Assembly (NCBI RefSeq): GCF_039654945.1
Contig: NW_027361700.1
Span: forward strand, 8,618,001-8,682,000
Direction of reading: 5' to 3'
Source: Dendrobates tinctorius
Taxonomy: Eukaryota
Length of the DNA: 64,000 bases
This document shows positions 4,387 to 55,727 of the stretch, piece after piece. Position numbers and translations under genes: made by a program. The notes beneath the pieces were generated by a model, which saw only the letters and a list, made by a program, of their open reading frames with translations, was not told where the DNA came from and ran no database searches. Each line of letters opens with the position of its first letter. The stretch's first letter is position 1.

Positions 4387-4617
4387 GTTATCATTAGAGT
4401 TGAGCGAAACGGGTCGAAAAATTTCAAAAGTCTCCGACTTTTGGCAAAGTCGGGTTTCATGAAACGAAACCTGACCCTAGGATGAGGTCGGCCACGAGGT
4501 CGGCGACTTACGCGCCAAAGTCGCGTTTCATAAGTTTGTTTTGCGCTCTTTTTCAGCCAATCAGGATCTCCGGATGGCTCCTTGGACACGACCAAGCAAA
4601 TCCCGGAAGGTCTCTTG

Positions 4618-4779
4618 AGCAAAGGTAATAGGTTTTTGACAACTATGAGTGACAATTACCTTTCACAGCTAATTCAGGACCCAACAAGAGGGGGGGCACT
4701 GCCACACCTAATATTAACCAACAGGCCAGACCGCATATCAAATATAAGGGTTGGGGGTCACTTGGGTAATAGTGATTAC
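4618..4779 (+). pseudogene. CR1 APE-endonuclease fragment enclosed between the two hAT left ends
   Basis: Translates SKGNRFLTTMSDNYLSQLIQDPTRGGALPHLILTNRPDRISNIRVGGHLGNSDY, homologous to the CR1 peptide in ORF 36762-37298 of this window (QKGNRFLLIAKNNYLSQLMQNPTRGAALLDLILSNRPDRI...GHLGNSDH). Confidence 0.9.
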
Positions 4780-4939
4780 TAGAGTTGAGCGAAACGGGTC
4801 AAAAAATTTCAAAAGTCGCCGACTTTGGGCAAAGTCGGGTTTCATGAAACGAAACCCGACCCTAGGATGAGGTCGGCCACGAGGTCGGCGACTTACGCGC
4901 CAAAGTCGCGTTTCAAAAGTTTGTTTTGCGCTCTTTTTC

Positions 4940-5090
4940 GGCCAATCAGGATCCACGGACACTGTGGGCAACGTGATGACATAGGCAGGGGTCACCACCA
5001 TCTTTCAGAAGGGCATGCAAGTGATTGGCTTGCTTTGGTGGGCGTCACAGGGGGTATAAAAGGGCGTGCACGCCGACCGCCATCTTACTT
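4940..5090 (+). promoter_or_regulatory. Putative Pol II promoter of the hAT transposase
   Basis: CCAAT (about 4942), ATTGG (about 5024), TATAAAAG at 5055 and a YY1-like CGCCATCTT at about 5078, in canonical order. Motif inference only. Confidence 0.5.
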
Positions 5091-5157
5091 CTGCCGATCT
5101 CAGTATAGGGAGAGGTTGCTGCTGATTCTGTAGGGAGAGCGTTAGGCAGGGAAGAAG

Positions 5158-5568
5158 ACAAAAAAACTGCTTCTGCTGCTAGCAATTTGGCCTGCACAAC
5201 ACACCAGTCACTGTGTGTGCAGTGCAAGGGGAGGCTATATAGTAGTGTATCAGTGGTGTTGGTTGTTGGGCTGCCTTCTAAGGCTTCCTGACATTCCTGC
5301 ATTGCTGTTTACCCACTGCTCCGCAAACTGCTTTTTTAAAAGCAATCCCAATTTTTTTTTTTGTCCTGCTGAGAAGAAAAAAAAACTGCTTCTGCTGCTA
5401 GCGATTTGGCCTGCACAACACACCAGTCACTGTGTGTGCAGTGCAAGGTGAGGCTATATTGTGGTGTATCAGTGGTGTTGGTTGTTGGGCTGCCTTTTAA
5501 GGCTTCCTGACAGGCTGGCATTGCTGTTTACCCACTGCTCTGCAAACTGCTTTTTTAAAAGCAATCCA
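5158..5568. repeat. Two-copy direct repeat, period about 220 bp, inside the hAT element
   Basis: AAAAAAACTGCTTCTGCTGCTAGC...TTTTTAAAAGCAATCC occurs at about 5161 and again at about 5380. Confidence 0.85.
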
Positions 5569-8040
5569 ATCTCCCTTATCCTCTAGTCACTTTTGTCACA
5601 GCTGTGCCATCGAACCTGTGACATAGCGCTCAGATATCAGTGGCCCTCACACAATCCAAAAGTGTCCAGTGTCCACAAGTGTCTGCAGAAATTCAAAATC
5701 TCCCTTATCCTCTAGTCACTTTGGTCACAGCTGTGCCATCGAGCCTGTCACATAGCGCTCAGATATTCATTGGGCCTCACACAATCCAAAAGTGTCCAGT
5801 GTCCACAAGTGTGTGCAGAAATTCAAAATTTCCCTTATCCTCTAGTCACTTTGGTCACAGCTGTGCCATCGAGCCTGTCACATAGCGCTCAGATATTCAT
5901 TGGGCCTCACACAATCCAAAAGTGTCCAGTGTCCACAAGTGTGTGCAGAAATTCAAAATCTCCCTTATCCTCTAGTCACTTTGGTCACAGCTGTGCCATC
6001 GAGCCTGTCACATAGCGCTCAGATATTCATTGGGTCTCACACAATCCAAAAGTGTCCAGTGTCCACAAGTGTGTGCAGAAATTCAAAATCTCCCTTATCC
6101 TCTCGTCACTTTTGTCACAGCTGTGCCATCGAGCCTGTGACATAGCGCTCAGATATCAGTGGCCCTCACACAATCCAAAAGTGTCCAGTGTCCACAAGTG
6201 TCTGCAGAAATTCAAAATCTCCCTTATCCTCTAGTCACTTTGGTCACAGCTGTGCCATCGAGCCTGTCACATAGCGCTCAGATATTCATTGGGCCTCACA
6301 CAATCCAAAAGTGTCCAGTGTCCACAAGTGTGTGCAGAAATTCAAAATCTCCCTTATCCTCTAGTCACTTTGGTCACAGCTGTGCCATCGAGCCTGTCAC
6401 ATAGCGCTCAGATATTCATTGGGCCTCACACAATCCAAAAGTGTCCAGTGTCCACAAGTGTGTGCAGAAATTCAAAATCTCCCTTATCCTCTAGTCACTT
6501 TGGTCACAGCTGTGCCATCGAGCCTGTCACATAGCGCTCAGATATTCATTGGGCCTCACACAATCCAAAAGTGTCCAGTGTCCACAAGTGTCTGCAGAAA
6601 TTCAAAATCTCCCTTATCCTCTAGTCACTTTGGTCACAGCTGTGCCATCGAGCCTGTCACATAGCGCTCAGATATTCATTGGGTCTCACACAATCCAAAA
6701 GTGTCCAGTGTCCACAAGTGTGTGCAGAAATTCAAAATCTCCCTTATCCTCTAGTCACTTTGGTCACAGCTGTGCCATCGAGCCTGTCACATAGCGCTCA
6801 GATATTCATTGGGTCTCACACAATCCAAAAGTGTCCAGTGTCCACAAGTGTGTGCAGAAATTCAAAATCTCCCTTATCCTCTAGTCACTTTGGTCACAGC
6901 TGTGCCATCGAGCCTGTCACATAGCGCTCAGATATTCATTTGGCCTCACACAATCCAAAAGTGTCCAGTGTCCACAAGTGTGTGCAGAAATTCAAAATCT
7001 CCCTTATCCTCTAGTCACTTTGGTCACAGCTGTGCCATCGAGCCTGTGACATAGCGCTCAGATATCAGTGGCCCTCACACAATCCAAAAGTGTCCAGTGT
7101 CCACAAGTGTCTGCAGAAATTCAAAATCTCCCTTATCCTCTAGTCACTTTGGTCACAGCTGTGCCATCGAGCCTGTCACATAGCGCTCAGATATTCATTG
7201 GGCCTCACACAATCCAAAAGTGTCCAGTGTCCACAAGTGTGTGCAGAAATTCAAAATCTCCCTTATCCTCTAGTCACTTTGGTCACAGCTGTGCCATCGA
7301 GCCTGTGACATAGCGCTCAGATATCAGTGGCCCTCACACAATCCAAAAGTGTCCACAAGTGTCTGCAGAAATTCAAAATCTCCCTTATCCTCTAGTCACT
7401 TTGGTCACAGCTGTGCCATCGAGCCTGTCACATAGCGCTCAGATATTCATTGGGCCTCACACAATCCAAAAGTGTCCAGTGTCCACAAGTGTGTGCAGAA
7501 ATTCAAAATCTCCCTTATCCTCTAGTCACTTTGGTCACAGCTGTGCCATCGAGCCTGTCACATAGCGCTCAGATATTCATTGGGCCTCACACAATCCAAA
7601 AGTGTCCAGTGTCCACAAGTGTGTGCAGAAATTCAAAATCTCCCTTATCCTCTAGTCACTTTTGTCACAGCTGTGCCATCGAGCCTGTGACATAGCGCTC
7701 AGATATCAGTGGGCCTCACACAATCCAAAAGTGTCCAGTGTCCACAAGTGTCTGCAGAAATTCAAAATCTCCCTTATCCTCTAGTCACTTTGGTCACAGC
7801 TGTGCCATCGAGCCTGTCATATAGCGCTCAGATATTCATTGGGTCTCACACAATCCAAAAGTGTCCAGTGTCCACAAGTGTGTGCAGAAATTCAAAATCT
7901 CCCTTATCCTCTCGTCACTTTTGTCACAGCTGTGCCATCGAGCCTGTCACATAGCGCTCAGATATCAGTGGGCCTCACACAATCCAAAAGTGTCCAGTGT
8001 CCACAAGTGTCTGCAGAAATTCAAAATCTCCCCTGTCCTA
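5568..8040. repeat. 130-bp tandem array, about 19 copies, upstream of the transposase
   Basis: Unit AATCTCCCTTATCCTCTAGTCACTTTGGTCACAGCTGTGCCATCGAGCCTGTCACATAGCGCTCAGATATTCATTGGGCCTCACACAATCCAAAAGTGTCCAGTGTCCACAAGTGTGTGCAGAAATTCAA. It has 129- and 130-bp variants, and one unit has an 8-bp deletion (about 7350). Confidence 0.97.
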
Positions 8041-8108
8041 TAGACACCTTGTACCTTGTTTTACATTACTATATAGTTTGTTGGATTTTGTCTACATTTC
8101 TACCAAAA

Positions 8109-11100
8109 ATGAGGAAGGCTGGTGGAAGAGGCCGTGGAATTGGGCGGGGGTTGGCAGCTGGTAATGATGGTGTTGGTGGTGTATCTGATGGTAGTGGCAA
8201 AAGCAAAATAGGACCGAATGCAGGAGGTGTTGAGCCTGCGTCATCGTCTGGCTACATAAGGCCTCGAATGCTTAGTTTTCTAGGAGTTGGCAAACCGCTT
8301 TTAAAGCCAGAGCATCAGGAAAAAGTTTTGTCTTACATTGCTGACTCAGCCTCCAGCTCTATCGCCTCCTCTTCTTCAGTTGTAAAAAGTAAAAGCACTG
8401 AGTCGTCATTGGAGGCTCATGTTCATGAACCACACCTTTCCTTGTGTCCTTCACCCCAACCAAGATTGAAGGATGACGCAGGCCATACTACTGATTACTC
8501 CATGGAGCTGTTTTCACATACCATGCCTGGATTATCAAGTCAAATGGTGAATTACCCAGGCCAAGATGAATCTGACATGGAGTGCACTGATGCACAGCCG
8601 CTGATGGATGATTCTGTTGGTACATTCACTCAGAGCACTACATTGTCCTCGCAGTGTACAGAGCCAGATTCTGACCCTGATGAGACTCAGGTGCCCCTTC
8701 CCGCACACTATACCACCATACACGGTGACACAGAGGAAGGTGCACATGACATAGAAGAGGAGGTGATGGATGACCCAGTTGTTGACCCAGATTGGCATCC
8801 ATTGGTGGAAAAGGGTGCTGCTTCCAATAGTTCAGATGAGGAGCATCCACAGCAGACATCGACATCGCAACAGCTGTTATCTGGCAGGCCCGGAGCACTC
8901 CAAAGACAGGTTCCAAACATCAAAAGAGTTGCTGGACAGCTTGTCCAGAGGGTCAAAAGATCACAGCGTGCTAGGCCGCAAAATGTCTGCCAAAGTAGGA
9001 AGAGTGCAGTGTGGCACTTTTTTGACCAAAATCCTCATGATCAGGCCAAGGTTATCTGTAAGAAGTGCGCAAAGACCTTTAGCCGAGGGAAAAATCTGAA
9101 AAATTTGAATACCAGTTGCATGCTTAGACATTTAACCAGCATGCACTTGCAAGCGTGGACACAACACCAAACCTCAAGTGCCACATGTGCAACTGATCAC
9201 AACGAAGGTAGTCAGCAACGCTACATTGTTTCCCCCACTGTAAGCCCACCGGTTAGCACAGCAGCAAATGTTGAGGTGTCGTTGCAAGGCCACAGCAGTC
9301 AGGGAATCCCACTGTTATATCAACGAAAGACTGATTCTAGGCCATCAGAAAGAACACCAACTCCATCACCATCATCAACCCTCTCTCAGTCCGCCCTGTC
9401 CACCGCTACTTCCACCATATGCAGCTCTCAAGTCCAGCTCAACCTCCCAGACACTATGAGTAGGTCAAGAAAGTACTCAGTCTCTCATCCGCGTACACTG
9501 GGTTTGAACGCCCACATTGCCAAACTAATCTTGTTTGAGATGATGCCCTTTCGGTTGGTGGAAAGCACAGCTTTCCGCGAACTCATGGCCTATGCAGTAC
9601 CACGCTATGACCTACCCAGTCGCCACTTCTTCTCTCGCAAAGCCATCCCAGCCCTCCACCATCATGTGAAAGACCGCATTGTCCATGCACTCAAGCAGTC
9701 AGTGAGCGGAAAGGTGCACCTCACAACTGATGCATGGTCCAGTCGGCATGGCCAGGGCCGTTACGTGTCCATCACTGCGCACTGGGTTAATGTGGTGGAT
9801 GCAGGGTCCACAGGGGACAGCGGTGGTGGGACAGTGCTGCCTAGCCCACGGTATAGGAAACAGTTGGCTGTAGGCGTTCGACCCTCCTCCTCCTCCAGAA
9901 GCGAAAGCTCGTCCACAGAGCGCAGTCGTACGAGCACTCCATCTGCAGCTGCCACTGTTGCACACGATGTGTCCCCCTATCGAGCAGCTAGTGGAAAGCG
10001 TCAGCAGGCTGTGTTGCAGATGATGTGTTTGGGCAACAGACACACCGCCGAGGTGCTGGCCGAGTACTTGAAGCGACAAACTGAGTCATGGCTGGGCAGT
10101 GTACATCTTGAGGCAGGCAAGGTAGTTAGTGATAACGGCCGTAATTTTGTGGCAGCCATAGCCCTTTCAAAACTCAGCCATATACCTTGCTTGGCTCACA
10201 CCTTGAACCTGGTGGTGCAGTGCTTCCTCAAAAATTATCCGGAGTTAACAGCCCTGCTCCAGAAGGTGCGAAGACTGTGTGCGCACATCCGCCGGTCGCC
10301 TGTACACTCCGTTCTTATGCAGAAGCTGCAGCGATTGCTCCACCTTCCCAACCACTGCCTCATTATCGACATTGCAACAAGGTGGAACTCCACCCTGCAC
10401 ATGGTGGAGCGGCTGTGCGAGCAGAGGCAGGCCATAATGCATTTGTGGGAGGATACACGGCCAGGCACTTTGAGAGCAGACATGGAGTTGACAGGTGTGC
10501 AGTGGTCGAAGCTGAAAGACCTCTGTAAAGTCCTTCAGTGTTTTGAGGAATGCACACGGCTGGTAAGCGCAGACAACGCCATCCTAAGCATGAGCATCCC
10601 ACTTATGTGTCTGCTCATGCAAACTTTGACGCACCTTAAGGAGCAGGCGTCTGCAGCCAATGTTGATGAGGAGGAAGAGGAGGAGGGAATCCTTGATGAC
10701 ATTCAGCCATTGTCTGCTCAGGGACCTCTCCTGGACGAGGTGGAGGAAGAAGAGGAGGAGGAGGAGGATGATGGGGATGATTACTTAGGGGAGGAGGATG
10801 CATCTCGTGGGGCTAGTGAAAATGTTGGTGTGGCAAGGTCTGGTACAGGGTTTGTGCGTGACTGGAGGGATGTGGATTTGCCAGAAAGTGCTCCTCCAAC
10901 CAGCACTCGCAGTGCATCATTGACACCGGGAACATTGGCCCACATGTCAGATTATGCCTTGCAGATCCTAAAAAGGGACCCACGCATTGCCAAAATGATG
11001 AACGATGACGACTACTGGTTGGCCAGCATCCTGGATCCACGCTATAAAGGCAAATTACAAAACATCATGCCACAGGAGAACCTTGACCTAATATTGGCTA

Positions 11101-11642
11101 ATAAACAAGCAACTCTGGTAAATCGGTTGCTTGAGGCATTCCCAGCACACAGCAGCGGTGATGGTTCTCACACGAGCCGTACGGGCCAGGGGCAGCTTGG
11201 CAGAGGTGTTCGTGGTGCACACAGCAGAAGTGGCGTTGGAGACAGGGGTTTCATGACAATGTTGTGGACTGATTTTTCAAGTACCGCTCACACAACTGGT
11301 AATACTGCATCGATGGAAAGTGACAGGAGACAGCAGTTGTCAACTATGGTTACAAACTACTTTTCCTCCCATATCGATGTTCTCCCACACAGGTCATTCC
11401 CCTTTGACTATTGGGCCGCTAAACTGGACACCTGGCCTGAATTGGCACAATATGCCTTACAGGAGCTCGCTTGCCCAGCTGCAAGTGTGCTATCGGAAAG
11501 AGTCTTCAGTGCAGCTGGATCAATCCTGACAGAAAAAAGGACCCGTCTGTCAACCCAAAATGTGGATGATCTAACCTTCATTAAAATGAACCACGCATGG
11601 GTGTCCAAGGATTTTGTCCCACCTTCCCCTGATGACACATAG
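8109..11642 (+). CDS. hAT transposase (BED zinc finger, RNase H-like DDE core, hAT C-terminal dimerisation domain), 1177 aa
   Basis: The first ATG of the long ORF is at 8109 (MRKAGG). BED finger SAVWHFF..ICKKC..MLRHLTSMH. Catalytic and conserved motifs LTTDAWSS, VSDNGRN, CLAHTLNLVV, TRWNS, LDPRYK, ACPAASVLSERVFS. No stops or frameshifts. Confidence 0.95.
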   Translation: MRKAGGRGRGIGRGLAAGNDGVGGVSDGSGKSKIGPNAGGVEPASSSGYIRPRMLSFLGVGKPLLKPEHQEKVLSYIADSASSSIASSSSVVKSKSTESSLEAHVHEPHLSLCPSPQPRLKDDAGHTTDYSMELFSHTMPGLSSQMVNYPGQDESDMECTDAQPLMDDSVGTFTQSTTLSSQCTEPDSDPDETQVPLPAHYTTIHGDTEEGAHDIEEEVMDDPVVDPDWHPLVEKGAASNSSDEEHPQQTSTSQQLLSGRPGALQRQVPNIKRVAGQLVQRVKRSQRARPQNVCQSRKSAVWHFFDQNPHDQAKVICKKCAKTFSRGKNLKNLNTSCMLRHLTSMHLQAWTQHQTSSATCATDHNEGSQQRYIVSPTVSPPVSTAANVEVSLQGHSSQGIPLLYQRKTDSRPSERTPTPSPSSTLSQSALSTATSTICSSQVQLNLPDTMSRSRKYSVSHPRTLGLNAHIAKLILFEMMPFRLVESTAFRELMAYAVPRYDLPSRHFFSRKAIPALHHHVKDRIVHALKQSVSGKVHLTTDAWSSRHGQGRYVSITAHWVNVVDAGSTGDSGGGTVLPSPRYRKQLAVGVRPSSSSRSESSSTERSRTSTPSAAATVAHDVSPYRAASGKRQQAVLQMMCLGNRHTAEVLAEYLKRQTESWLGSVHLEAGKVVSDNGRNFVAAIALSKLSHIPCLAHTLNLVVQCFLKNYPELTALLQKVRRLCAHIRRSPVHSVLMQKLQRLLHLPNHCLIIDIATRWNSTLHMVERLCEQRQAIMHLWEDTRPGTLRADMELTGVQWSKLKDLCKVLQCFEECTRLVSADNAILSMSIPLMCLLMQTLTHLKEQASAANVDEEEEEEGILDDIQPLSAQGPLLDEVEEEEEEEEDDGDDYLGEEDASRGASENVGVARSGTGFVRDWRDVDLPESAPPTSTRSASLTPGTLAHMSDYALQILKRDPRIAKMMNDDDYWLASILDPRYKGKLQNIMPQENLDLILANKQATLVNRLLEAFPAHSSGDGSHTSRTGQGQLGRGVRGAHSRSGVGDRGFMTMLWTDFSSTAHTTGNTASMESDRRQQLSTMVTNYFSSHIDVLPHRSFPFDYWAAKLDTWPELAQYALQELACPAASVLSERVFSAAGSILTEKRTRLSTQNVDDLTFIKMNHAWVSKDFVPPSPDDT

Positions 11643-12060
11643 GGTGACAGAAAAATGGCTTGCTTTGGTCCACCTCTTCCTGGGACTTGACCTATTTCAC
11701 CTTTTGCATCAGCTGAATGTCCAACATCAATATATGCCACTTTCTAAAACTCCCTAACTGTGCTGCCTCCCCCCCATGGCCGGGGTCACCACCTAGCGCA
11801 CGACACCGTGCGAGTGCCGTTGCCCTGGACAGGTGGGTAGGCCGACTCTTGGGCGCGGGCACTGGCACAGGGTCCTTCATAGTGCAATCAAGTGTCTCTG
11901 ATGGTGGTGGTGCACACCCGCCGTCAGACACACCGCCGTACTATGAGGGGCCCAGTGCCAGTACCGACGCCCACGAGTGGGCCCCCCTTGCTTGGGCAGG
12001 GCCCCAGCATTTGCAATCTTTACCTCTCCCTGCTCCTCCGCTGTGTAGTCTGGGCCGTCA

Positions 12061-12595
12061 AATCCATACTGTGCCTGACACTGTCTGAGCCTGCCTCCTG
12101 ATGTATAGACATATATTTTGAATGTGTACGCTATCCATACATGTTATCTGGGGATACGGTACCCTTTCTAACCTTTGTGCAATCACGTGCAATCCATACT
12201 GGGCCTAACACCGTCTGAGCCTGCCTCCTGATGTATAGACATATATTTTTTAAATGTGTACGCTATCCATACATGTTATCCGGGGAAACGGTACCCTTTC
12301 TAACCTTTGTGCAATCACGTGCAATCCATACTGGGCCTAACACCGTCTGAGCCTGCCTCCTGATGTATAGACATATATTTTGAATGTGTACGCTATTCAT
12401 ACATGTTATCTGGGGATACGGTACCCTTTCTAACCTTTGTGCAATCACGTGCAATCCATACTGGGCCTAACACCGTCTGAGCCTGCCTCCTGATGTATAG
12501 ACATATATTTTGAATGTGTACGCTATCCATACATGTTATCTGGGGATACGGTACCCTTTCTCACCTTTGTGCAATCACGTGTAATCCATACTGGG
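12061..12595. repeat. Second 130-bp tandem array (about 4.1 copies) downstream of the transposase
   Basis: AATCCATACT recurs at 12061, 12191, 12323, 12453 and 12583 (spacings 130, 132, 130, 130). The sequence is unrelated to the upstream array. Confidence 0.95.
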
Positions 12596-12705
12596 CGTGA
12601 GAACGGCTGGCGAGCTGTTAAGCAAGCTACAGCACCTGTGGTTTGCACACGCAAGTTTTTCATTTTTTCAGGAATGACGGTTAGGCCTAATTCCGGAACT
12701 GCGGT

Positions 12706-13182
12706 TGACCTGCACTTACTGGGAAATCATTGTTCGCGGGTAATAATTGTAATCAGTGATTTCCATCACTAACGTTGTTCAGCGGGTTATCTGCACCTGT
12801 AAGCGACAAACGCTGGCCTTTTCAGTGTAGCGCACATGCAGCCACGGACATGTAAGGGCATGACACACCAGTTATTGGCCAATCTCATGTGTCAGAGCCT
12901 CACGAGTCCCTCTAGTAAGCCGGACTCGGACCGCGGGGCATGACGGAGTCTCGTTCGTTAACGGAATTAAGCTTGCAATGTGTGCATCTGTTCTGTAGCT
13001 GGCATGGTTGAGGTTTCCCAGGTGGAGTCGAATTTAACCGTAGGCTCCACTCCTGGTGGTGCCCTTCTGGACATTCCTTTAAGGTTCAGCTTTGCAACCA
13101 TACTGCCCACGTAAAACAAACACTTTGCCTTCATGAACGCTGTTTGGAGGGTCATGACTCGTGGGAATAACGCCGCCCAATC
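12706..13182 (-). pseudogene. Diverged 18S rRNA fragment (3' half) carried inside the hAT element
   Basis: The plus strand matches the reverse complement of conserved 18S motifs in colinear order: GCACTTACTGGGAA, TCAGTGTAGCGC, TAAGGGCAT, GAGTCTCGTTCGTTA.CGGAATTAA, GGCTCCACTCCTGGTGGTGCCCTTC, CAGCTTTGCAACCATACT, GGGAATAACGCCGCC. It has many substitutions and an internal deletion near 12970. Confidence 0.9.
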
Positions 13183-14744
13183 AGTTAACCTGCTAGAGAG
13201 ATCGTTCGTTGCTCCCAAGCATGACATCACACTCCCTAGGAAGAAGGTAATGCCACTGTGGCGACCGTACTCCTGGGGGCGACACAAGTGCACTGATGCC
13301 CAGCCACTGCTCGATGAATCTGCTGGTACATTGACCCAGACCACTACATTCCCCTCGCACGCTACACGACCTGAATCTGACCCTGATGAAACTCAGGTTA
13401 CCCTTCCCATATACAGTTCCATCTTACACGGTGACAAAGAGGAAGCTGCAGATGAAAGTGCAGGTTCGGCCCACCCGCCATCAGACACACCACCGTACTA
13501 TCAGGGGCCCTGTGCCAGTGCCGTCGCCAACGAGTGGGCCCCCCCTGCTTGCTCAGGATCACAGCACTTGCAAAGTTGAAATACTGTGCAGTGAGATGGA
13601 AGATGGGGACGACGAGGAGTCCAGACAAGTACAGGGATTCCATAGCGAGGAGACTTATTTGATTGTTTTCAATGTTGGGACAGTAATTTTTGGGGAGCAC
13701 TATACTCTGGAGAATGATAGATGGGGCCCACCATACACTGGAACATTCCAAAGGTGGACATCAGACACTGGAGCAGCATTTACAGGGCCCATTATACACT
13801 AGAGCATTAAAAATGGGGCCCATTATGTTTGGAGCATTATTTGGGCCCATAAGACAGTGGAGCTTCATCCATGGGGACCAACATATACTGTAGCATTATG
13901 TGGAGCTCATCATATACTGTTTCAAACATTATATGGGACCAATGATTCTGTATGGAGAAATAGATGGGCCTTGTCATGAGATGTAAAAAGTGAGGTATTT
14001 TTCATTGTACTATACCGCTATTTCTCTGCCGTATCGGAGCATGATGAGTTGTGGTATGTGTTAAAGGGGCGCTCTTTCGCCCAGGGCACATGAAAACCTG
14101 CAGCCAGCCCTCCCCCCCCACAACTTTAGCCAAATAACCCCCATTTTTCAGTGCGTAATTTGTATTATGAAGTTAATTAAGGTTGACAAGCTTAAGTAAG
14201 AAGAATTGATGCTTTTGGCATTCAAATGGACACTGTAGGTGTGTTTCCTGTCCTCCTCTCACTGCCGACTTTTATTCCCCATTGACTTACATTGGGTTTC
14301 GTGTTTCGGGACGACCCCGACTTTTCCCTATAATCGGACGATCTTGCTCGACCCGACTTTTGGAAAAGTCGGGTTTCACGAAACGAAACGTGACCCTAAA
14401 AAACCAAAAGTCGCTCAACTCTAGTTATCATTAATCTTGTGAAATTTTTTCATGGATACAACTCTGGAATATATGAGGATTTTGTGATGATGGCATTTTG
14501 CACTATGCACTTTAAATTTTGTTATTGCTAATATATTTCATATTATGTGAATTTGTTTTTCGGAGGACATTGTTACAGTTGATATTACTTTCACCAGCTT
14601 TTTTTGTAACCAGCTTTTTCTTCCCCGATGAGGATTACTTGTTTGTTGAGTTCATGTTTTTAATGTTATGAATAAAATTATTTTTTATCCATTTCTTTGC
14701 CTCTGTATCCCTATTCATTCAATGGGGATTTTGCTAATATAGAT

Positions 14745-15406: not shown

Positions 15407-15577
15407 NNNNNNNNNNNNNNNNNNNNNNNNNNNNNNNNNNNNNNNNNNNNNNNNNNNNNNNNNNNNNNNNNNNNNNNNNNNNNNNNNNNNNNNNNNNNNN
15501 NNNNNNNNNNNNNNNNNNNNNNNNNNNNNNNNNNNNNNNNNNNNNNNNNNNNNNNNNNNNNNNNNNNNNNNNNNNNN
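15407..15577. other. Assembly gap (171 N)
   Basis: Run of N characters. Confidence 1.
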
Positions 15578-30261: not shown

Positions 30262-30562
30262 ATCCCTTCCCATAGGTCTGTATAGTATCATGCACCAGAT
30301 AGTCCTCAATATAGTATAATGCACTCCCCATAAGCCTGTACAGCATAATGCATTCCCCATAGGCAGCCTGTATAGTGTAATGCACTCTCCATAGGCCTGT
30401 ATAGTATAAAGCACTCCCCATTGGCCTGTATAGTATAATGCACTCCCCCATAGGCAGCCTGTATAGTATAATGCATTCCCATTGGCAGCCTGTGTAGTAT
30501 AATGCATTCCCCATAGGCAGCCTGTATAGTATAATGCACCCCCATAGACAGCATCTATAGTA

Positions 30563-33548
30563 TACTGCTCAAAAAATAAAGGGAACACTAAGATACCACA
30601 TCGTAGATATCACTGAATGAAATATCGCAGCTGCAAATCTTTATTCATTACATAGTGGCATGCTTTGAGAACAAGAAAACATAAAAATGATCAATCTAAA
30701 TCAAAATTAATATCCCCTGGAGGTCTGGATACTCAAAATCAAAGTGGAAAATCAAATTACAGGCTGATCCAACTTCAGTGGAAATGCCCCGACAAGGAAG
30801 TGATGATCAGTAGTGTGTGTGGCCTCCACGTGCCTGTTTGACCTCCCTATGACACTTGGGCATGCTCCTGATGAGTCGGTGGATGTTGTCATGACGGATC
30901 TCCTCCCAGACCTGGACTAAAGCATCCGCCAACTCCTGGACAGTCTGTGGTGTAATGTGACTTTGGTGGACGAAGCGAGACATGATGTCCCAGATGTGCT
31001 CAATCGGATTCAGGTCTGGGGAATGGGCGGTACAGTCCATAGCTTCAGTGCCTTCATCTTACAGGAACTGCTGACACACTGCAGCCACATGAGGTCTGGC
31101 ATTGTCCTGCATTAGGAGGAACCCAGGGCCAACCACACCAGCATATGGTCTAACAAGGGGTCTGAGGATCTCATCTCGGTACCTAATGGCTGTAAGGCTA
31201 ACCCTGGTGAGCACACGGAGGGCTGTGCGGCCCTCCAAAGAAATGCCACCCCACACCATTACTGACCTACTGCCAAACCGATCATGCTGAAGGATGTTGC
31301 ATGCCAGACCAATGCCCAAACCCCATAACCTCCCTACTTAACATCACTGAAGGGGAGCTTGCTCATCTTCTCTCCAAATCGCACCTCACCACTTGTACAC
31401 TTGACCCTATCTCATCCCACCTCCTCCCCAACATCACCACCACTCTTATCCCATCTCTAACCCACCTCTTCAACCTATCACTAACTTCCGGTACCTTCCC
31501 TTCTGCTTTCAAGCATGCCACAATCACGCCTATCCTTAAAAAGCCAACCCTCGACCCAACAGCCATGTCCAGCTATCGCCCAATATTGCTGCTCCCATTT
31601 GCTTCCGAACTCCTGGAACAGCATGCCCATGCTGAACTTTCCTCCCACCTCTCCTCTAACTTGCTCTTTGACAATCTACAATCTGGTTTCCGTCCCCATC
31701 ATTCCACTGAGACAGCCCTGACCAAAATTACCAATGACCTACTTACAGCCAAAGCTAACAGACAATACTCTATACTCCTCCTTCTAGACCTGTCCTCTGC
31801 TTTCGACACAGTTGACCACTGCCTCCTACTACAGATCCTCTCCTCCGTTGGCATCAGACCTCGCCCTATCCTGGATCTCCTCATACCTTACCAACCGCAC
31901 ATTCAGCGTCTCCCACACTACCTCCTCATCCCACCCTCTCTCTGTTGGGAGTCCCCCAAGGCTCTGTTCTAGGACCCCTACTCTTCTCAATCTATACACT
32001 TGGCCTGGGGCAACTCAAAGTCCCATGGATTTCAGTACCACCTCTATGCCGATGATACTCATATCTACCTCTCTGGCCCAGACGTCACCTCTCTGCTGTC
32101 CAGAATCCCAGAGTGTCTATCAGCCATATCCTCCTTCTCCTCTCGCTTCCTCAAACTCAATGTGGACAAATCGGAACTGATCATCTTTCCCCCATCTCAC
32201 AGATCTTCCTTACCCAACCTATCTATAACAATTGACGACATCATGATTTCCCCCGTACCAGAGGTCCACTGCCTCGGAGTAACCCACTCTTCCCTGTTCT
32301 TCAATCCGCACATCCAAGCTCTCTCCACCTCCTGTCGCCTCCAGCTCAAAAATATTTCCAGAATCCATCCCTTCTTCAACCCTCATTCTAATAAAATGCT
32401 TGTGCATGCCCTCATCTCCCACCTCGACTATTGCAACATCCTTTTCTGTGGCCTCCCTGCTAACACCCTCGCACCTCTCCAGTCCATCCTTAACTCTGCC
32501 GCCCGACTAATTCATCTCTCCTCGCTACTCCTCCGCTTCTCCCCTCTGCAAATCTCTTCACTGGCTCCCATTCCCTCAGCGTATCCAATTCAATTTACTA
32601 ATACTGACCTACAAGGCCATCTATAACCTTTCTCCGCCTTATATCTCTGAACTAATCTCCCGATATCTTCCCTCACGTAATCTCCGGTCCTCCAAGACTT
32701 CTCCCGAATAGCCCGCATCCTCTGGAATTCTTTGCCCCAACACGTCCGACTATCAACCACAATCGGATCCTTCAGACGGAACCTGAGAACCCATCTCTTC
32801 AGGAAAGCTTACAGCCTGCAAAGATCCTCGCTGCCTCCTCACCACTACTGGAGCTACTGCCTCACCATCACTGGAGCTGCTGCAACCCCCAAACCTACTG
32901 TCTCCTTCCCCACTATCCTGTAGAACGTAAGCCCGAAAGGGCAGGGTCCTCTGTCCCTTCTATATCAGTCTGTGATTTTTAGTTTGTTTACTGTAAGTGA
33001 TATCTGTACTTTGTATGTTACCCCTGTTGCAGACAGCAGATCGCTCTCCATGGCGTCTCCAGACTCTGTAACATGTGCTCAGTGTGAACCTGCTTTCATC
33101 TGTGAAGAGCACAGGGCGCCAGTGGCGAATTTGCCAAACCTGGTGTTCTGTGGTAAATGCCAAGTGTCCTGCACGGTGTGAGGCTGTGAGCACAACCATC
33201 ATCTATGGACATCGAGCACTCAGGCCATCCTCATGGAGTCGATTTCTAACCGTTTGTGCAGACACATGCACATTTGTGGCCTGCTGGATGTCATTTTGCA
33301 GGGCTCTGGCAGTGCTCCTCCTGTTCCTCCTTGCACAAAGGCTGAGGTAGCAGTCTTGCTGCTGGGTTGTTGCCCTCCTACAGCCCCCTCCACGTCTCAT
33401 GGTGTACTGGTCTGTCTCCTGGTAGCGCCTCCAGCCTCTGGACACTATGCTGACAGACACAGCAAACCTTCTTGCCACAGCTCGCATTGATGTGCCATCC
33501 TGGAGGAGTTGCACTACCTGAGCAACTTTTGTGGGTTGTAGAGTCCGT
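30563..33548 (-). mobile_element. Tc1-like (DD34E) element, one end missing, split by an L2 insertion
   Basis: Terminus (T/C)ACTGCTCAAAAAATAAAGGGAACACT after TA. Minus-strand pieces give an HTH ([17 protein letters not shown]), LFTDESRF, VMVWGGIS, MQDNARPH and SPDLNPIEH. Confidence 0.9.
31302..33024 (+). mobile_element. L2-clade LINE fragment (reverse transcriptase)
   Basis: SYRPI.LLP, QSGFRPHHSTETAL, LLDLSSAFDTVDH, HLYADDTHIY and LDYCN motifs; flanked by a TGTTGCA duplication of Tc1 sequence (31295-31301 and 33025-33031). Confidence 0.92.
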
Positions 33549-34760
33549 CATAGGCAGCCAGTATAGTATAATGCACCCCCATAGGCAGCCTGTATAGTAT
33601 AATGAACCTAGATAAAAAAAAAATCCAATACTCACCTCTCCCCCTTGTTGTTATTGTTCCCAAAGTGCTCTGAGCGCCTACACATCTTCAGACAGCGGGC
33701 ACTGAGCACTGACATCATTGCAACCCCATCAGTGTCGGCGCTGTTGACGTCAGACACTGAGAGGGGGTGATGGGAGATGGAGCGTAACGCTCCTTCTCTC
33801 ATAAATGCGGTCAGCTGTATCGGCATCCAGCCGATACAGTTGAACCTGCGATGACGAGCGGGGGGCCCACTGATGATACAGGGCCCCCCACTGCCTCCTC
33901 AGGGGCCCTATAGCGGCCGGGTGGCAGAGCAGGGAGATCGATTCTCCATGCTCTGCCGCATAATGTAACTGTATCGGCACGATGTGCTCGCCGATAGTTA
34001 CATAGCCTAACTCCAGGTGGGACCCCTCAGAGCACGGGGCCCGGGGCCACAGCCCCCTCTGTAACTAAGCTACTGGTTCATTCTAATGAAATCCAAAATA
34101 CATCAGTTTCCCCAAGTGCTAAGGAGAAATTGGTAGAACTTCATGTAATAAATCTCTGCAAAGGTGATCTGACATTTTAGATGACCAAATTCTTTGAAGT
34201 TCCTACTGTAAAATGAATGATATAATGTGCTAAACAATCAAGTGCAGCTCATTAATGTTAATCAATGAATGATTAGAAAAAAGCTACACTAACATAGAGC
34301 CAGCTTGTGACTTCAGGATGTTACAATTACACAACTGCAAATCGTGCGTTTAAAAAGTCATTCTCTTTACTGTACAAGTTGTTTCATCCTGTAGAAACAC
34401 TAGGGTAATGAACATAAGCGTGTTTATTGCTTCTACATCTGGAAGGTCTCCAAGATCAGTCATTTTGGGATATGCTGACATCAATGTACCATGCTTCAAG
34501 GATGTGTGCTCTTTTTTCAATACGTGAATCAGTTTCTTGTATCTCATGAACAAAGAAACAAGGATTCATCTCCATTTTACATATAAACTCAGATAATTGG
34601 TATCACTAGGGGGGCTTCAGTTGCCTTTGGGTCCCAATGACTTAGTGGAACTTTTGCACCTCCTATCACATAAAAAAGCAATATGATAGCGATGGCAAGA
34701 CATCTTATGTGAAACGGTGCTGGTTATTAGATTAGTTATTGAGCCTCCGCCGACATCATA

Positions 34761-37700
34761 CATAGTAACATAGTTAGTAAGGCCGAAAAAAGACATTAGT
34801 CCATCCAGTTCAGCCTATAAAATTCTGTCAGAATAAATCCCCAGATCTACGTCCTTCTAAAGAACCTAACAATAACTGTAAGATACAATATTGTTACGCT
34901 CCAGGAAGACATCCAGGCCTCTCTTGAACCCTTCGACTGAGTTCGCCATCACCACCTCCTCAGGAAGGGAATTCCAGATTCTCACTGCCCTAACAGTAAA
35001 AAATCCTCTTCTATTTTGGTGGAAAAACCTTTTCTCCTCCAGACGCAGACCCCTTGTGACCATCACCTTCCTCGGTATAAACAGATCCTCGGAGAGATAT
35101 TTGTATTGTCTCCTTATATACTTATACATGGTTATTAGATCGCCCCTCAGTCGTCTTTTTTCTAGACTAAATAATCCTAATTTTGCTAATCTCTCTGGGT
35201 ATTGTAGTTCCCCCATCCCCTTTATTAATTTTGTTGCCCTCCTTTGTACCCGCTCTAGTTCCATTATATCCTTCCTGAGCACCGGTGCCCAAAACTGTAC
35301 ACAATACTCCATGTGCAGTCTAACTAGAGATTTGTACAGAGGCAGTATAATGCTCTCATCATGTGTATCCAGACCTCTTTTAATGCACCCCATGATCATG
35401 TTTGCCTTGGCAGCTGCTGCCTGGCACTAGCTGCTCCAGGTAAGTTTATCATTAACTAGGATCCCCAAGTCCTTCTCCATGCCAGATTTACCCAGTGGTT
35501 TACCGTTCAGTGTGTAATGGTGATATTGATTCCTTCTTCCCATGTGTATAACCTTACATTTATTAAACTGCATCTGCCACCTTTTGGCCCAAGTTCCCAA
35601 CTTATCCAGATCCATCTGTAGCAGAATACTATCTTCTCTTGTATTGACTGCTTTACATAGGTTTTGTATCATCTGCAAATATCGATATTTTACTGTGCAA
35701 ACCTTCTACCAGATCGTTAATAAAAATATGTTGAAGAGAATAGATCTCAACACCAACCCCTGCGGTACCCCACTGGTCACAGCGACCCAGTTAGAGAATA
35801 TATCATTTATAACCACCCTCTGCTTTCTATCACTAAGCCAGTTACTTACCCATTTACACACAATTTCCCCCAGACCCAGCATTCTCATTTTGTGTACCAA
35901 CCTCTTGTGTGGCACGGTATCAAACGCTTTGGAAAAATCAAGATATACCACATCCAATGACTCACCTTGGTCCAGTCTATAGCTTACCTCTTCATAAAAA
36001 CTGATTAGATTGGTTTGACAGGAGCGATTCCTCATAAACCCATGCTGATATGGAGTTAAACAGTTATTCTCATTGAGATACTCCAGAATAACATCCCTCA
36101 AACCCTTCAAATATTTTACCAACAATAGAGGTTAGACTTACTGGCCTATAATTTCCAAGTTCACTTTTAGAGCCCTTTTTGAATATTGGTACCACATTTG
36201 CTATGCGCCAGTCCTGTGGAACAGACCCCGTCGCTATAGAGTCTCTAAATATAAGAAATAATGGTTTGTCTATTACATTACTTAGTTCTCTTAGTACTCG
36301 TGGGTGTATGCCATCCGGACCCGGAGATTTATCTATTTTAATCTTATTCAGTCAGTTTTGCACCTCTTCTTGGGTTAGATTGGTGACCCTTAATATAGGG
36401 TTTTCTTTGTCTCTCGGCATTTCACCTAGCATTTTATTTTCCACCGTGAATACCGTGGAGAAGGTGTTTAATAGATTAGCTTTTTCCTCATCATCTACAA
36501 CCATACTTTCCTCACAACTTTTTAATGGGCCTACACTTTCACTTTTGATTCTTTTACTATTGATATAGTTGAAGAACAGCTTGGAACTAGTTTTACTCTC
36601 CTTAGCAATGTGCTTCTCTGTTTCCTTTTTGGCAGCTTTAATTATTTTTTTAGATAAAGAATTTTTCTCCTTATAGTTTTTTAGAGCTTCAACGGTGCCA
36701 TCCTGCTTTAGTAGTTTAAATGCTTTCTTTTTACTGTTAATTGCCCCTCTTACTTTTTTGTTTAGCCACATTGGGTTTTTCCTATTTCTTGTCCTTTTAT
36801 TCCCACAAGGTATAAACCGCTTACAGTGCCTATTAGGGATGTTCTTAAACATTTCACATTTATTTTCTGTATTCTTTTTCTGAGGACATTGTCCCAGTCA
36901 ACCAGATTAAGGGCATTTCTAAGCTGGTCAAACTTTGCCTTCCTAAAGTTCAGTGTTTTTGTGACTCTCCGACATGTCCCCCTAGCGAAAGGCAAGTGAA
37001 ATTGTACAATATTGTGGTCGCTATTGCCTAGATGCCCAACAACCTGCAGATTTGTTATTCTGTCAGGTCTGTTAGATAGTATTAGGTCTAAAAGTGCTGC
37101 TCCTCTGGTTGGATTCTGCATCAATTGTGAAAGATAATTATTCTTGGCTATTAGCAGAAACCTGTTGCCTTTTTGGGTTTCGCAGGTCTCTGTTTCCCAG
37201 TTAATATCCGGGTAGTTAAAGACCCCCATAACAAGTACCTCATTATGAGTTGCAGCCAGAGTTGAGCGACTTTGGTCGGATCGGGTTTCATGAAACAAAA
37301 TTTGTTTCAGATGAAACTGGTCCGACTAGGGCTAAAAAAAAAGTCGGCGTTTCGTCCAAAACCCGACCCCAATGCAAATCAATGGGGATTAAAAGTCGGC
37401 ATTGAGTGGATGAATGTCATCCGCTCAATGCCGACTTTTTTTTCCCATTGACTTGCATTGGGATCGGGTTTCGGACGAAACTCTGACTTTTTTTGCCCTA
37501 GTTGGACCAGTTTCATCTGAAACAAATTTTGTTTCATGAAACTGGTAATTCACACCGTGGTCCTGGAATCCGAATCCTTGTTGTCTGCACCATCGTCTTA
37601 GCCAGTTGTTCGCATCAAGGATCCTGTTCCATCTCCTGGTGCCATGCCCGTCTACTGGAAGGATAGAAGAAAAAACTACCTGTGCATCCAGTTCCTTTAC

Positions 37701-49782: not shown

Positions 49783-50044
49783 GAGCATTTAACCCCTTTG
49801 GGTCACTCCTCTCCTGCCCTAGGACTGAACCTAAATCCCCTCCGCTTGCCTCTAGCAGCTAAAACGTTCAAAACTTAAGATGGGTCACAACTCCTTAATA
49901 GATAGTCCTAGGGGAGCATTTAACCCCTTTGGGTCACTCCTCTCCTGCCCTAGGACTGAACCTAAATCCCCTCCGCTTGCCTCTAGCAGCTAAAACGTTC
50001 AAAACTTAAGATGGGTCACAACTCCTTAATAGATAGTCCTAGGG
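49783..50044. repeat. Perfect 131-bp tandem duplication
   Basis: GAGCATTTAACCCC...GATAGTCCTAGGG starts at 49783 and again at 49914. Confidence 0.95.
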
Positions 50045-52436: not shown

Positions 52437-52741
52437 TAAGAGGGGGCATCGCCACTGCAGCTATGTCAACAAAGACCAGCAGGGATTAGTGGAGAGGTGA
52501 GGCCAAAGTGAATGTGACACCGATATTGTTATTTATAAACAGATGAAGATTTTGGTCATTTTGAAACTGGACACCTTCTTTAAGAAACAAACACAGAAAT
52601 GACAAGGACGATATTGTATTTTATACTCAAGTGTTGCCCAACCAGTGGCTTTTAAGCCACATATGACTCTTGGGATTACTGCATTTGGCATTAGTGATGT
52701 CATTAGTCTACACTGGCAAATCACTGAGAAGAGTAACATAG

Positions 52742-55237
52742 TGTCATGCCCGCCATGTCCGTTATGCCTGTCATGTCCGTTATACCTGTCATACCCGCCA
52801 TGTCCGTTATGCCTGTCATGTCCGTTATGCCTGTCATGCCCGCCATGTCTGTTATGCCGCATGACCCCTGGAGCAGTGTGCACATGCACCGAATTATCAT
52901 GCCTGCCATGTCTGATATGCCGCATGACTCCTGGAACAGTGTGCACGCGCGCCTTACCTCATGGCTGCACGCTGTTGCTAGGTAACCATCCGTCTCTGCT
53001 CTGATTCTGCAATCCTCTGTATTCCTGGAGCCCCTGATCATATGACCTTGCCTATGTTCCAGCACTGTCTGATTCTGCAATCCTCTATGTATTCCTGGAG
53101 CCCTGATCATGTGACCTTTCCTATGTTCCAGCACTGTCTGATTCTGCAATCCTCTATGTATTTCTGGAGCCCCTGATCATGTGACCTTCTCTATGGTTCA
53201 GCCCAGTCTGATCTAGCAACGCTCTCTATGATCCTGGAGGATCTGAGCCGGAAGTGCTTCCCTGGTCCTGACCCGGAACTGCAGGTGCTATGGTGCTATA
53301 TCTGACTGCCCCTTCCTATGGTCAGGGACTGAGTATATTGTTGCTTCCCTGCATGGCTGCTTGGTCTGCTTGGGCGCTCTCTGTATTCTGTGCCCCTGCA
53401 CTCTGCTCTGTAGTGCGTCTCTGCACAGGCTCTGTGCTTGCACTCTGCCTCTTGTTTCATGCCTTGTCTTGTGTTGTCTCTCGTGCCATGTTTTGTCTGT
53501 GTCATGCTTGGACTTGTAGTCCTTCCGATGTTCTCTGCTTTGGCATGTCTTGCCTTTGCTATGCTTTGCCTTGTGGTCCTTCCTACGTTCTCTGTCTTTG
53601 CTTGTTCTTTCTTGCTCTTACCTATGGTGCTCTGTTGTGCCTCCTGGCACATGCACCATTCCTCATTTCTGACCTATGGTGCTCTGTAGTGCCTCCTGGC
53701 ACACACACCATTCCTCCTCTCTTACCTCTAGTGCTCTCTTGCACATTTCCACACTAGTCTCAAGGTTCTCCCTTGACCCGGCTCTGGGCTTCGGCCTACG
53801 CTCCGCTGCTAACTCTGTTCTCGCTCTGACCTGGCTCTGTGTTTCTGCCTACGTTCCGCTCATTGTTCCGTACCCTGCCTAGCTTTGCCTTGTCTCTTCG
53901 TGTGCCCTTTGCATGCACCTGGCCTTCCTAGCCTCCTGCTTGTGCCTCAGCCGTGCCCGCCTGCTTGTGCCTCTGCCATGCTCGTCGGTCAGTGACAGCT
54001 GTGTCACCTGCTATGCCCCAGCCGGGTTCACTGGAGTCTTGCTCGCCTGTTTGTGCTGCAGCCCGACCAGCTAGCCAGTGCCCAGTCGTGCTCTCTGTGC
54101 TTCCTTGCACCTACGCTGTCTCTGCACTGTGCTCTCCGTGCTTCTCGCCCTCGCCTGCCCCGTGGCATACCTCCCCGTGCTTCTGTAAAAGTACGCGCAG
54201 GTCTTGCCATGTACACTGTCGTACCCTCTCGCTCGCACAGAGCCTGTACTCTGTCCCTGGCGTGTCCTCTGCACGTGCAGGACTCTGCTTTTAACCCTGA
54301 CCCTGGCGTGCCCTTATGCACACGCAGGACTCTGCCTTGAACCCTGACCATGGTGTGTCTCTCTGCACGCGCAGGACTCTGCCTTGAACCCTGACCCTGG
54401 CGTGCCCCTCTGCACACGCAGGACTCTGCCTTGAACTATGACCCTGGCGTGCCCTCTGCACGCGCAGGACTCTGCCTTGTCCCTAGTGCCTTGGCATGTC
54501 TCTACACACGCATACTGTCTTGTATGTTGAACTTTGAACCCTGGCGTGTTCCCTACACACGCACCGCGTATCGTACTTTGAACCTGGCGTGTCCCCTACA
54601 CACGCACCTTGCCTTGCACCTTGCCCTGGACCCTGGTGTGCCCCTAGCACGCACCCTGCCTGGAATCTTGCCTTGGACCTCGGCGTGTTCCCTAACACGC
54701 ACCATGCCTGGAGATCTGTCGTGCCTCCTTGCTTGTACCCTGGTTTGCCTGCTGGATTCCCGGAACCTGCCATCCCTGCCAGAGATCGTAAGCATGAAGT
54801 CTACAGCCTGACGCCCTGATCCCTGCCAGCTGCCCGGAGTCCGATGCCATCGTATCCTTGCCGGTAACCAGGCTTGCCTTCTAGCACGTACTATTCCATG
54901 GACCTTGGCGTGCCATGCACGCACCTTGCCGTGTTTGCTTGTTATCACGTTTTGCACTGAATGTTATCCTGAACTTGTCTTAATGAAGATACCTTGAACT
55001 TACGTCTTGTCTTGTTTCCTGCACGTCCTTGTTGTCAGACACTCGTACCTAGTGTCTACCTGAGCAGGCCGTCTGGTGCCAGCAGTCGTGGTGGCTCACC
55101 CCCTTGGTCTTGCCCCTGACACTCCCTGTATAGGGTGGTTCCTCACAAGGTCAGCTCGCCCTAGGTGGGTGGGTGCCACGACCCAGAGGGTCCACTCTAA
55201 AGAAAAAGTCGACTCAGCGTAAGCTGACCTCGTCACA
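52742..55237. mobile_element. Very long solo LTR-like element (2.5 kb) built largely of minisatellites
   Basis: TGTCATG...CGTCACA termini; 5-bp TSD CATAG/TATAG within a CR1 TAACATAG tail; internal tandem units of about 18, 58 and 43 bp. Confidence 0.7.
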
Positions 55238-55688
55238 TATAGTAACATAGTTAGCAAGACCGGAAAAAGACATTTGTCCATCCAGTTCAGCCTTTATTCC
55301 GTCAGAATAAATCCCCAGATCTACGTCCTTTAAAAGCAGGGGTCCCCAACCGCCGGTCCGCGGCCCAGCACCGGGCCGCTGCAGTGCCCTTGCCGGTCCG
55401 CGGACACAAGGGGAGCCAGGGGCGGTCAGTGGCGTAGCGGGGGCTGGGGCGGTGCGCAGCAATTCTTAAACTGCGTGTAGCGGCGGGCAGGGAGCGATCA
55501 AGCCGCTCCGCTGCCTGCAAGAGGGAATAGCAGGAGCGGAGCTGCAAGGACCCGTCCAGCTTCCTGCCCGCCGCCCGCGCTTCCTGTCTCTGACTGACAC
55601 AGAGAGGAGTGCGCCGCGGCCGCTGCTGTGTCAGAGCGAGGAAGCGCGGGCGATGCTGCGACAGGTGAGAGGAGAGAGGTGGTGTGTG

Positions 55689-55727
<39 letters not shown>

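Follow-up and report, generated by a model that had tools for sequence, protein, structure and literature searches.

A complete hAT element of the poison frog Dendrobates tinctorius with two unrelated 130-bp tandem arrays and an ATG-free stretch upstream of its transposase gene

Within a 64,000-nucleotide stretch of Dendrobates tinctorius contig NW_027361700.1 (positions 8,618,001 to 8,682,000; hereafter the window), we identified a complete hAT element of 10,029 bp, which occupies window positions 4395-14423 and is bounded by terminal inverted repeats (TIRs) of 13 bp and by a target-site duplication (TSD) of 8 bp. Its uninterrupted transposase gene is preceded by one tandem array of 130-bp units, array A, and followed by a second array of the same period, array B. 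An initial annotation of the window had taken this equal period as a possible sign of structural constraint or of a very old common origin. Our analysis shows that the two units are unrelated and suggests that the equal period is most likely a coincidence, a reading held with reasonable rather than high confidence. Array A lies within a run of 3,094 nt that contains no ATG on the coding strand, and this run is proposed to be the 5′ leader of the transposase mRNA. The element is probably a single insertion of an Ac-like, autonomous DNA transposon of the hAT superfamily, a grade that we give jointly to the whole explanation set out below.

The limits of the element are fixed by its TIRs and TSD exactly where they had first been placed. 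The outer left TIR, TAGAGTTGAGCGA (4395-4407, plus strand), is the perfect reverse complement of the right TIR (14411-14423, minus strand), and has the short form beginning YARNG that is expected of hAT termini. Outside the TIRs, the TSD GTTATCAT is identical on the left (4387-4394) and right (14424-14431) sides. The target consensus of hAT elements is nTnnnnAn, with which this TSD agrees in its second letter, T, and its seventh, A. A subterminal motif, CCGACTTT / AAAGTCGG, is confined to about 200 bp at each end of the element, namely the left subterminal region (outer copy 4395-4574, plus strand) and the right one (14249-14410, plus strand; CCGACTTT at 14265, 14317, and 14353), and presumably marks the ends to which the transposase binds. 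All tested defining features of an Ac-like hAT are present in the element. Apart from a truncated, related miniature inverted-repeat transposable element (MITE), there is no second copy within the 64-kb window. This MITE-like relative (37258-37545) begins with CAGAGTTGAGCGACTTTGG, matches 14249-14325 at 82% in both orientations, and carries AAAGTCGG / CCGACTTT motifs in its body, a palindrome whose centre lies near 37400; no right TIR was seen in it.

The left end of the element is doubled. The segments 4387-4574 and 4772-4959 are 94% identical in direct order, each with its own TIR, that of the inner copy (4780-4959, plus strand) being complete at 4780-4792. The flank of the inner left end, GTGATTAC, does not match the right TSD, which shows that the present insertion used the outer end. 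Trapped between the two ends is a 205-bp filler (4575-4779, plus strand) with a 66-codon open frame (open reading frame (ORF) 4582-4782). This frame seems to resemble the end of the endonuclease of a long interspersed nuclear element (LINE/CR1), a tentative likeness to which Pfam gave no support, returning nothing significant on the filler. In Ac/Ds, multiple-end structures such as this doubled left end (4395-4959) give rise to alternative transposition and chromosome breaks.

The transposase ORF (8109-11642, plus strand) encodes 1177 amino acids without any stop codon, as first described. Searches against Pfam detected a zf-BED domain (PF02892) at residues 299-346 with 45.7 bits (cut-off 20.6) and the hAT C-terminal dimerisation domain (PF05699) at residues 1091-1160 with 44.9 bits (cut-off 21.4). 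An RNase H-like DDE core is present with its conserved hAT blocks, TTDAWSS at residue 539, SDNGRN at 673, CLAHTLNL at 694, TRWNST at 757, and SERVFS at 1129. In an alignment with Hermes from a solved-structure search, which takes in the last four of these blocks, VVSDNGRNF corresponds to the D248 block, TRWNST to the W319 block, and SERVFS to the E572 block; the first aspartate block, TTDAWSS followed by ITAHW, was assigned by motif only. The closest recorded proteins come from Ranitomeya variabilis and R. imitator, are either called "ZBED4-like" or uncharacterised, and have identities of 57-70%, which places the genome among the dendrobatid frogs; no record identical to the 1177-residue protein was found, and a search with the N-terminal 260 residues brought up only NCBI proteins of this kind. 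The N-terminal start MRKxGGRGRG is kept in the Ranitomeya relatives, which identifies 8109 as the true start codon.

Tandem Repeats Finder placed array A at 5568-8051 (plus strand; 130 bp × 19.2, 96% matches) and array B at 12061-12596 (plus strand; 130 bp × 4.1, one unit of 132 bp, 95% matches), close to the roughly 19 and 4 copies that the initial annotation had counted on the two sides of the ORF. Array A was scored equally well with a higher-order period of 389 bp. Its anchor words are spaced 130 or 129 bp apart with the exception of one unit of 122/123 bp, so that 17 of the 18 units measure 129 or 130 bp; the corresponding spacings in array B are 130, 132, 130, and 130 bp. Units of array A fall into a 130-bp type "a" and a 129-bp type "b", and their order, a a a b a a a a a a b a b a a b a b, is a partial higher-order repeat. 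Mean pairwise identity between units is 97% in array A and 96% in array B. Adjoining the start of array A is a further tandem repeat (5153-5567, plus strand; 219 bp × 1.9, 94% matches by Tandem Repeats Finder). Both arrays lie inside the frame of TIRs and TSD, and the start junction of array A as well as units of both arrays were recovered from independent sequencing runs. Free-standing arrays of either unit are absent from the 64-kb window; the seeding of satellites by these arrays is plausible only in principle.

For comparison of the units, the consensus sequences were doubled to cover any rotation and aligned in both orientations, with dinucleotide shuffles as control. The best local alignment between the A and B units scored 19, a value reached by 56 of 500 shuffles (16.2 ± 2.1), and the best ungapped rotation gave 47 identities in 130 positions, with an expectation of 47.1. 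Words of six nucleotides common to both units are in slight excess (15 vs 7.8 ± 3.3, p about 0.03), but these words, such as CAATCCA, are arranged differently in each unit and are not collinear, and therefore bear no mark of a common ancestor. By these comparisons the units of arrays A and B are unrelated, in line with the first description. Rfam matched no family to either array, even at E values up to 1, and folding of the units in two registers on both strands gave no signal (z from −1.8 to +1.7); on these grounds a structured-RNA or small-RNA origin was rejected. The subterminal motif CCGACTTT / AAAGTCGG never occurs in array A or B; thus the units are not copies of the presumed transposase-binding motif, and its absence counts against the arrays as extra docking sites of the end type. 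The distance between the starts of the two arrays, 6,493 bp or 49.95 periods, was set aside as numerology, as a distance falls within 7 bp of a multiple of the period with a chance of about 11%.

Sequence analysis further revealed a strand asymmetry upstream of the transposase gene. The region 5016-8108 contains no ATG on the plus strand and 56 on the minus strand, and represents the longest ATG-free run of the 64-kb window, the next being 670 nt. It starts 39 nt before a TATA-like box, TATAAAAG (5055-5062, plus strand), a putative promoter element read from the sequence, which is followed about 30 nt downstream by TTACTTC, resembling an initiator (Inr), and it stops at the conserved start codon 8109. 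Given the repeats in this region, significance was assessed on a non-redundant sequence of 543 nt, composed of 5016-5152, a single copy each of the 219-bp unit and the A unit, and 8052-8108. This sequence has no ATG against 9.0 ± 2.3 expected, and none of 5000 dinucleotide shuffles reached zero; its minus strand has eight. Each of the four independent segments lacks ATG (P0 = 0.053, 0.02, 0.031, and 0.40), and in the joined 543 nt ATG is the sole missing trinucleotide among those without CpG.

A distant relative provides an independent replicate. On a 4.4-kb ENA contig (L001) with a hAT ORF 39% identical to the transposase of the window, all the DNA 5′ of the start codon (positions 1-684) contains no ATG on the coding strand, against 8.9 ± 2.4 expected and with 0 of 5000 shuffles at zero; the minus strand of these 684 nt has 20. 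This upstream region shows no nucleotide similarity to the leader in the window and holds no tandem array. ATG-free leaders may be a general trait of this hAT clade. The ATG-free run argues for the presence of the 5016-8108 region in the mature leader, and array A, which ends 58 bp upstream of the transposase ATG, probably sits in the leader of the transposase mRNA. Among the contigs of the family, neither a joint nor a loose end supports a splice across array A. The leader of maize Ac is long as well, and its shortening raised activity in Arabidopsis (PMC2921059). We did not find a description of an AUG-free, array-filled leader. Elsewhere in the window, a GC-rich stretch at 52700-56100 (up to 58% GC) holds the second-longest plus-strand ATG-free run (54984-55652) and is dense in short-period arrays, with periods of 17, 18, 24, 45, 47, 51, 52, 69, and 141 bp.

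Behind the stop codon, the element carries a series of further modules, and together with the doubled left end they bear out the rRNA cargo, hairpin, and duplicated end of the initial annotation. A long hairpin lies just behind the stop codon (about 11840-11985, plus strand; DNA fold −51.6 kcal/mol, z = −7.07), with weak palindromic miRNA-like Rfam matches on both strands. Beyond array B follows a decayed antisense fragment of 18S rRNA (12677-13108, minus strand; RF01960, 90 bits, E = 1e-22), covering model positions 1118-1666. Then come two old internal duplicates side by side: a copy of the ORF segment 8581-8749 at 13287-13455 (plus strand, 80% identity, family D7) and a copy of the post-ORF segment 11912-12016 at 13469-13573 (plus strand, 86% identity, family D9). 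The adjacency of these two segments suggests the layout of an internally deleted derivative, and the whole element accordingly has the appearance of a chimera, in which filler DNA separates an autonomous from a deleted copy. Chimeric products with filler are known from gap repair and filler capture in Ac/Ds (PMC3260210). The only canonical poly(A) signal of the trailer is ATTAAA at 13806; accordingly, array B may lie in a long 3′ untranslated region, a tentative placement. Between the duplicated segments and the right subterminal region, 13686-13880 contains a unit of about 45 nt (GGGGCCCA...ATACACTGGAGCA) in four degenerate copies, at irregular intervals of 31, 61, and 58 bp from start to start.

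To place the copy in the window among its family, contigs from public runs were aligned to window 7700-13699 at a likeness threshold of 88%; the depth of contigs in these data is not a copy number. In one DNA run of the same organism label, 94,033 contigs aligned, 27,280 of them at a likeness of at least 99%. The family is thus very high-copy and young. Dendrobatid genomes are reported to be rich in hAT elements, which make up 3.9% of the assembly in Dendrobates tinctorius (PMC11152451), with 255 Mb of hAT at low divergence in Oophaga pumilio (PMC6278860). The small runs X7, from another study, and X15, of a second organism label, yielded long contigs that cover the ORF together with the 18S piece and the tail; these diverge from the window by about 0.7%, with 25 of 3,424 letters in X7. 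The ratio of array depth to ORF depth in both runs is near that given by the element's own copy numbers, read as contig depth and not as genomic copies.

Copies of the family commonly differ in their modules. A joint of 12637 to 13619, which removes the 18S piece together with the duplicated segments, occurs in three runs, and in X7 and X15 its depth is comparable to that of the long form. In the same two runs, contigs diverge at 12065/12067, the start of array B, into sequence absent from the window. Several joints skip about 1,550 bp spanning array B and the 18S piece. In run X17, of a third organism label, the bins of the ORF are deep (8,000-86,000), those of array A go up to just 900-2,500, with 220-340 in the two bins that fall entirely within array B; a loose end leads to other sequence before 8040. 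Relatives in this third species thus seem to carry the ORF but not much of the two arrays, which gives no more than a hint that the arrays were added in particular lineages. Every copy that has the 130/130 layout is a member of one family; such copies reflect one evolutionary event, and are not replicates of each other.

The family majority (over 90% of the depth in X1) differs from the window at 20 listed places, 14 of them in the ORF; among these listed ORF differences, nine are non-synonymous and five synonymous, and several are CpG to TpG changes. The window copy accordingly has at least nine amino-acid replacements relative to the protein of the family majority. It shows neutral decay after insertion, probably under methylation. 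The family plausibly is a good candidate for recent or current activity, given the intact ORF with all catalytic blocks, the perfect TSD and TIRs, the abundance, and the module variants among copies. The earlier proposal of a modular, cargo-carrying hAT that may be active in a vertebrate thus stands for the family more than for the window copy, which looks intact but has decayed a little.

These results enable us to propose a putative history of the element. The family would have been amplified recently and to very high copy number in a dendrobatid poison frog, moving by ordinary hAT cut-and-paste transposition with the BED/DDE transposase, the 13-bp TIRs, the subterminal CCGACTTT repeats, and the 8-bp TSD. 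Its non-coding DNA would be a patchwork gathered through faulty gap repair, alternative ends, and local tandem duplication; the pieces include the doubled left end with foreign DNA, the 219-bp duplication, the two arrays, the old 18S fragment, and the remnants of a deleted copy. Array A may have expanded from an AUG-free piece within a 3.1-kb 5′ leader that would extend from the TATA-box promoter to the start codon. It would have been tolerated there, with AUG kept out, because ribosomes that scan the leader have to arrive at the AUG of the transposase. Array B would be a variable module of the 3′ trailer. The two arrays are supposed to have arisen independently from unrelated sequence, and their equal period to have been passed once, from a master copy, to the whole family.

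The coincidence of the two periods is accepted because no reason for it was found in any test and because this pair of arrays was singled out by a screen of many windows. It is favoured by units that share no common ancestry, binding-type motif, or RNA structure, by the inconstant presence of array B, and by relatives that seem to lack the arrays. Furthermore, a nucleosome core comprises 147 bp, and a period of 130 bp falls below this length. A perfect (100%) tandem duplication of 131 bp is found at 49783-50044, 35 kb away; its sequence is unrelated to those of A and B, which rules out kinship with either unit and shows that near-equal periods do arise by chance. Several points weigh against the proposed explanation. 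By a rough estimate, with periods assumed to be log-uniformly distributed between 20 and 500 bp, one pre-chosen pair would agree exactly in modal period with a chance of 0.2-1%, and it is the screening of many elements and windows alone that makes the coincidence acceptable. In place of a leader, the region could consist of promoter monomers, for which the same pattern is predicted. Selection on a cis feature of a transposase that acts in trans is expected to be weak, which makes an AUG-free leader harder to explain. In addition, contig depths are not copy numbers, the diverged non-coding DNA of the X17 organism could have fallen below the 88% threshold, and some of the joints of about 1,550 bp and about 4,707 bp may come from contigs misplaced between D7 and D9, which are paralogous segments of the element.

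One alternative is that array A consists of promoter monomers. In mouse L1, tandem 5′ monomers serve as the promoter of the retrotransposon. If array A worked similarly, transcription would start within its units and the number of units would set expression. Array A lies directly upstream of the ORF, with 58 bp between it and the ATG, which suits such a role, and its sense strand is AUG-free, as the role would also predict. However, the TATA box and the Inr-like site lie upstream of array A, the ATG-free run begins just before the TATA box, no TATA-like word occurs within the A unit, and the distant relative has an AUG-free leader without any array. We thus regard promoter monomers as rather unlikely. 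A constraint on the period itself, as the initial annotation had put forward, would mean that the arrays on both sides provide phased chromatin or spaced docking sites for a multimeric BED-domain transposase, aiding transpososome assembly or protecting the gene. It would explain why two unrelated arrays of one very successful family share exactly the same modal period and why nearly all units of array A keep it. Nevertheless, both units lack the subterminal motif and any fold or RNA-family signal, their common words are not collinear, and 130 bp is shorter than one nucleosome core. Array B and its neighbouring modules, the 18S piece included, vary among abundant copies, and the ORF-rich relatives of the third species, to judge from depth, seem to be without both arrays. 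The distant relative, moreover, is AUG-free over 684 nt with no array in the part on its contig, and copies of one family are not independent replicates. A constraint of this kind is therefore unlikely. Equally improbable is that the arrays in the two untranslated regions are functional, tuning transposase expression or chromatin by means of a selected 130-bp unit and thereby aiding the spread of the family.

Descent of both arrays from one ancestral 130-bp array, diverged past recognition with the period held by concerted evolution, accords with the equal period and the slight excess of common 6- and 7-mers (p about 0.03). It is contradicted by the lack of any alignment above shuffles in any orientation or rotation, and by the different order of the common words in the two units. 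Much older internal duplicates of the element are still 80-86% identical, and the low depth of the arrays in the X17 organism suggests that they are young. The very old common origin offered by the initial annotation thus appears highly improbable. The third, unrelated 131-bp repeat in the same window could point instead to a genome-wide mutational preference for tandem duplications of about 120-130 bp, set for example by a step length of replication or repair. Yet the other arrays of the window have periods of 219, 141, 84, 69, 63, 54, 52, and 51 bp, and a sample this small could by no means reveal a peak; we give this preference little credence. Among the sequences with other periods are two arrays of 29-31-bp units (TATAGTATAATGCA...CCCCATAG) at 30310-30568 and 33549-33608, 3 kb apart within a region of strong negative GC skew (28-36 kb), which may be the two ends of another repeat-bearing element. 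A run of N occupies window positions 15407-15577.

In summary, the equal period of the two arrays cannot be upheld as evidence of function. The AUG-free leader with array A, echoed in a distant relative, yields a testable rule on the repeats that are tolerated upstream of a transposase gene, and strand-specific ATG-free runs that end at a start codon are suggested as a route to transposase leaders from sequence only. To our knowledge, few vertebrates have DNA transposons that look recently active. A 10-kb hAT family whose transposase is intact, and whose near-identical contig pieces number in the tens of thousands, offers a useful case for the study of genome gigantism, and perhaps a tool.

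Three groups of known systems are reminiscent of this element. The monomers of mouse L1 are likewise tandem units of 100-200 bp located directly upstream of the first ORF in the transcribed 5′ region; they differ in that L1 is a retrotransposon with monomers serving as its promoter, whereas the TATA box of the frog element lies upstream of array A. With maize Ac/Ds and Hermes the element shares the 8-bp TSD of the form nTnnnnAn, a short TIR starting with TAG, subterminal regions of about 200 bp with a repeated motif, and a transposase composed of a BED-type zinc finger, a DDE core, and a C-terminal hAT dimerisation domain. Like Ac/Ds, it has a long, in its case proposed, untranslated leader, internally deleted and filler-carrying derivatives, and multiple-end structures (PMC3260210, PMC2921059). 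Unlike Ac, it is a vertebrate element of 10 kb rather than 4.6 kb with an ORF free of introns, and it differs from both Ac and Hermes in its putative 3.1-kb leader made up mostly of tandem repeats and in the second array and 18S fragment of its trailer. Transposons with internal tandem repeats able to seed satellites are exemplified by Tetris of Drosophila virilis (PMC4079207), the Donax trunculus MITE DTC84 (PMC3879986), and arrays derived from retrotransposons (PMC7004042). As in elements of the Tetris and DTC84 type, the arrays described here are homogeneous, lie inside a mobile element and spread with it, vary in copy number, and have higher-order structure; the carrier, in contrast, is an autonomous hAT whose transposase is intact, and its two arrays are unrelated to each other, each lying in a presumed untranslated region. 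Thus, transposons that carry and spread internal arrays are already known, and the one feature of the frog element for which we met no earlier description is its probable AUG-free, array-filled leader.

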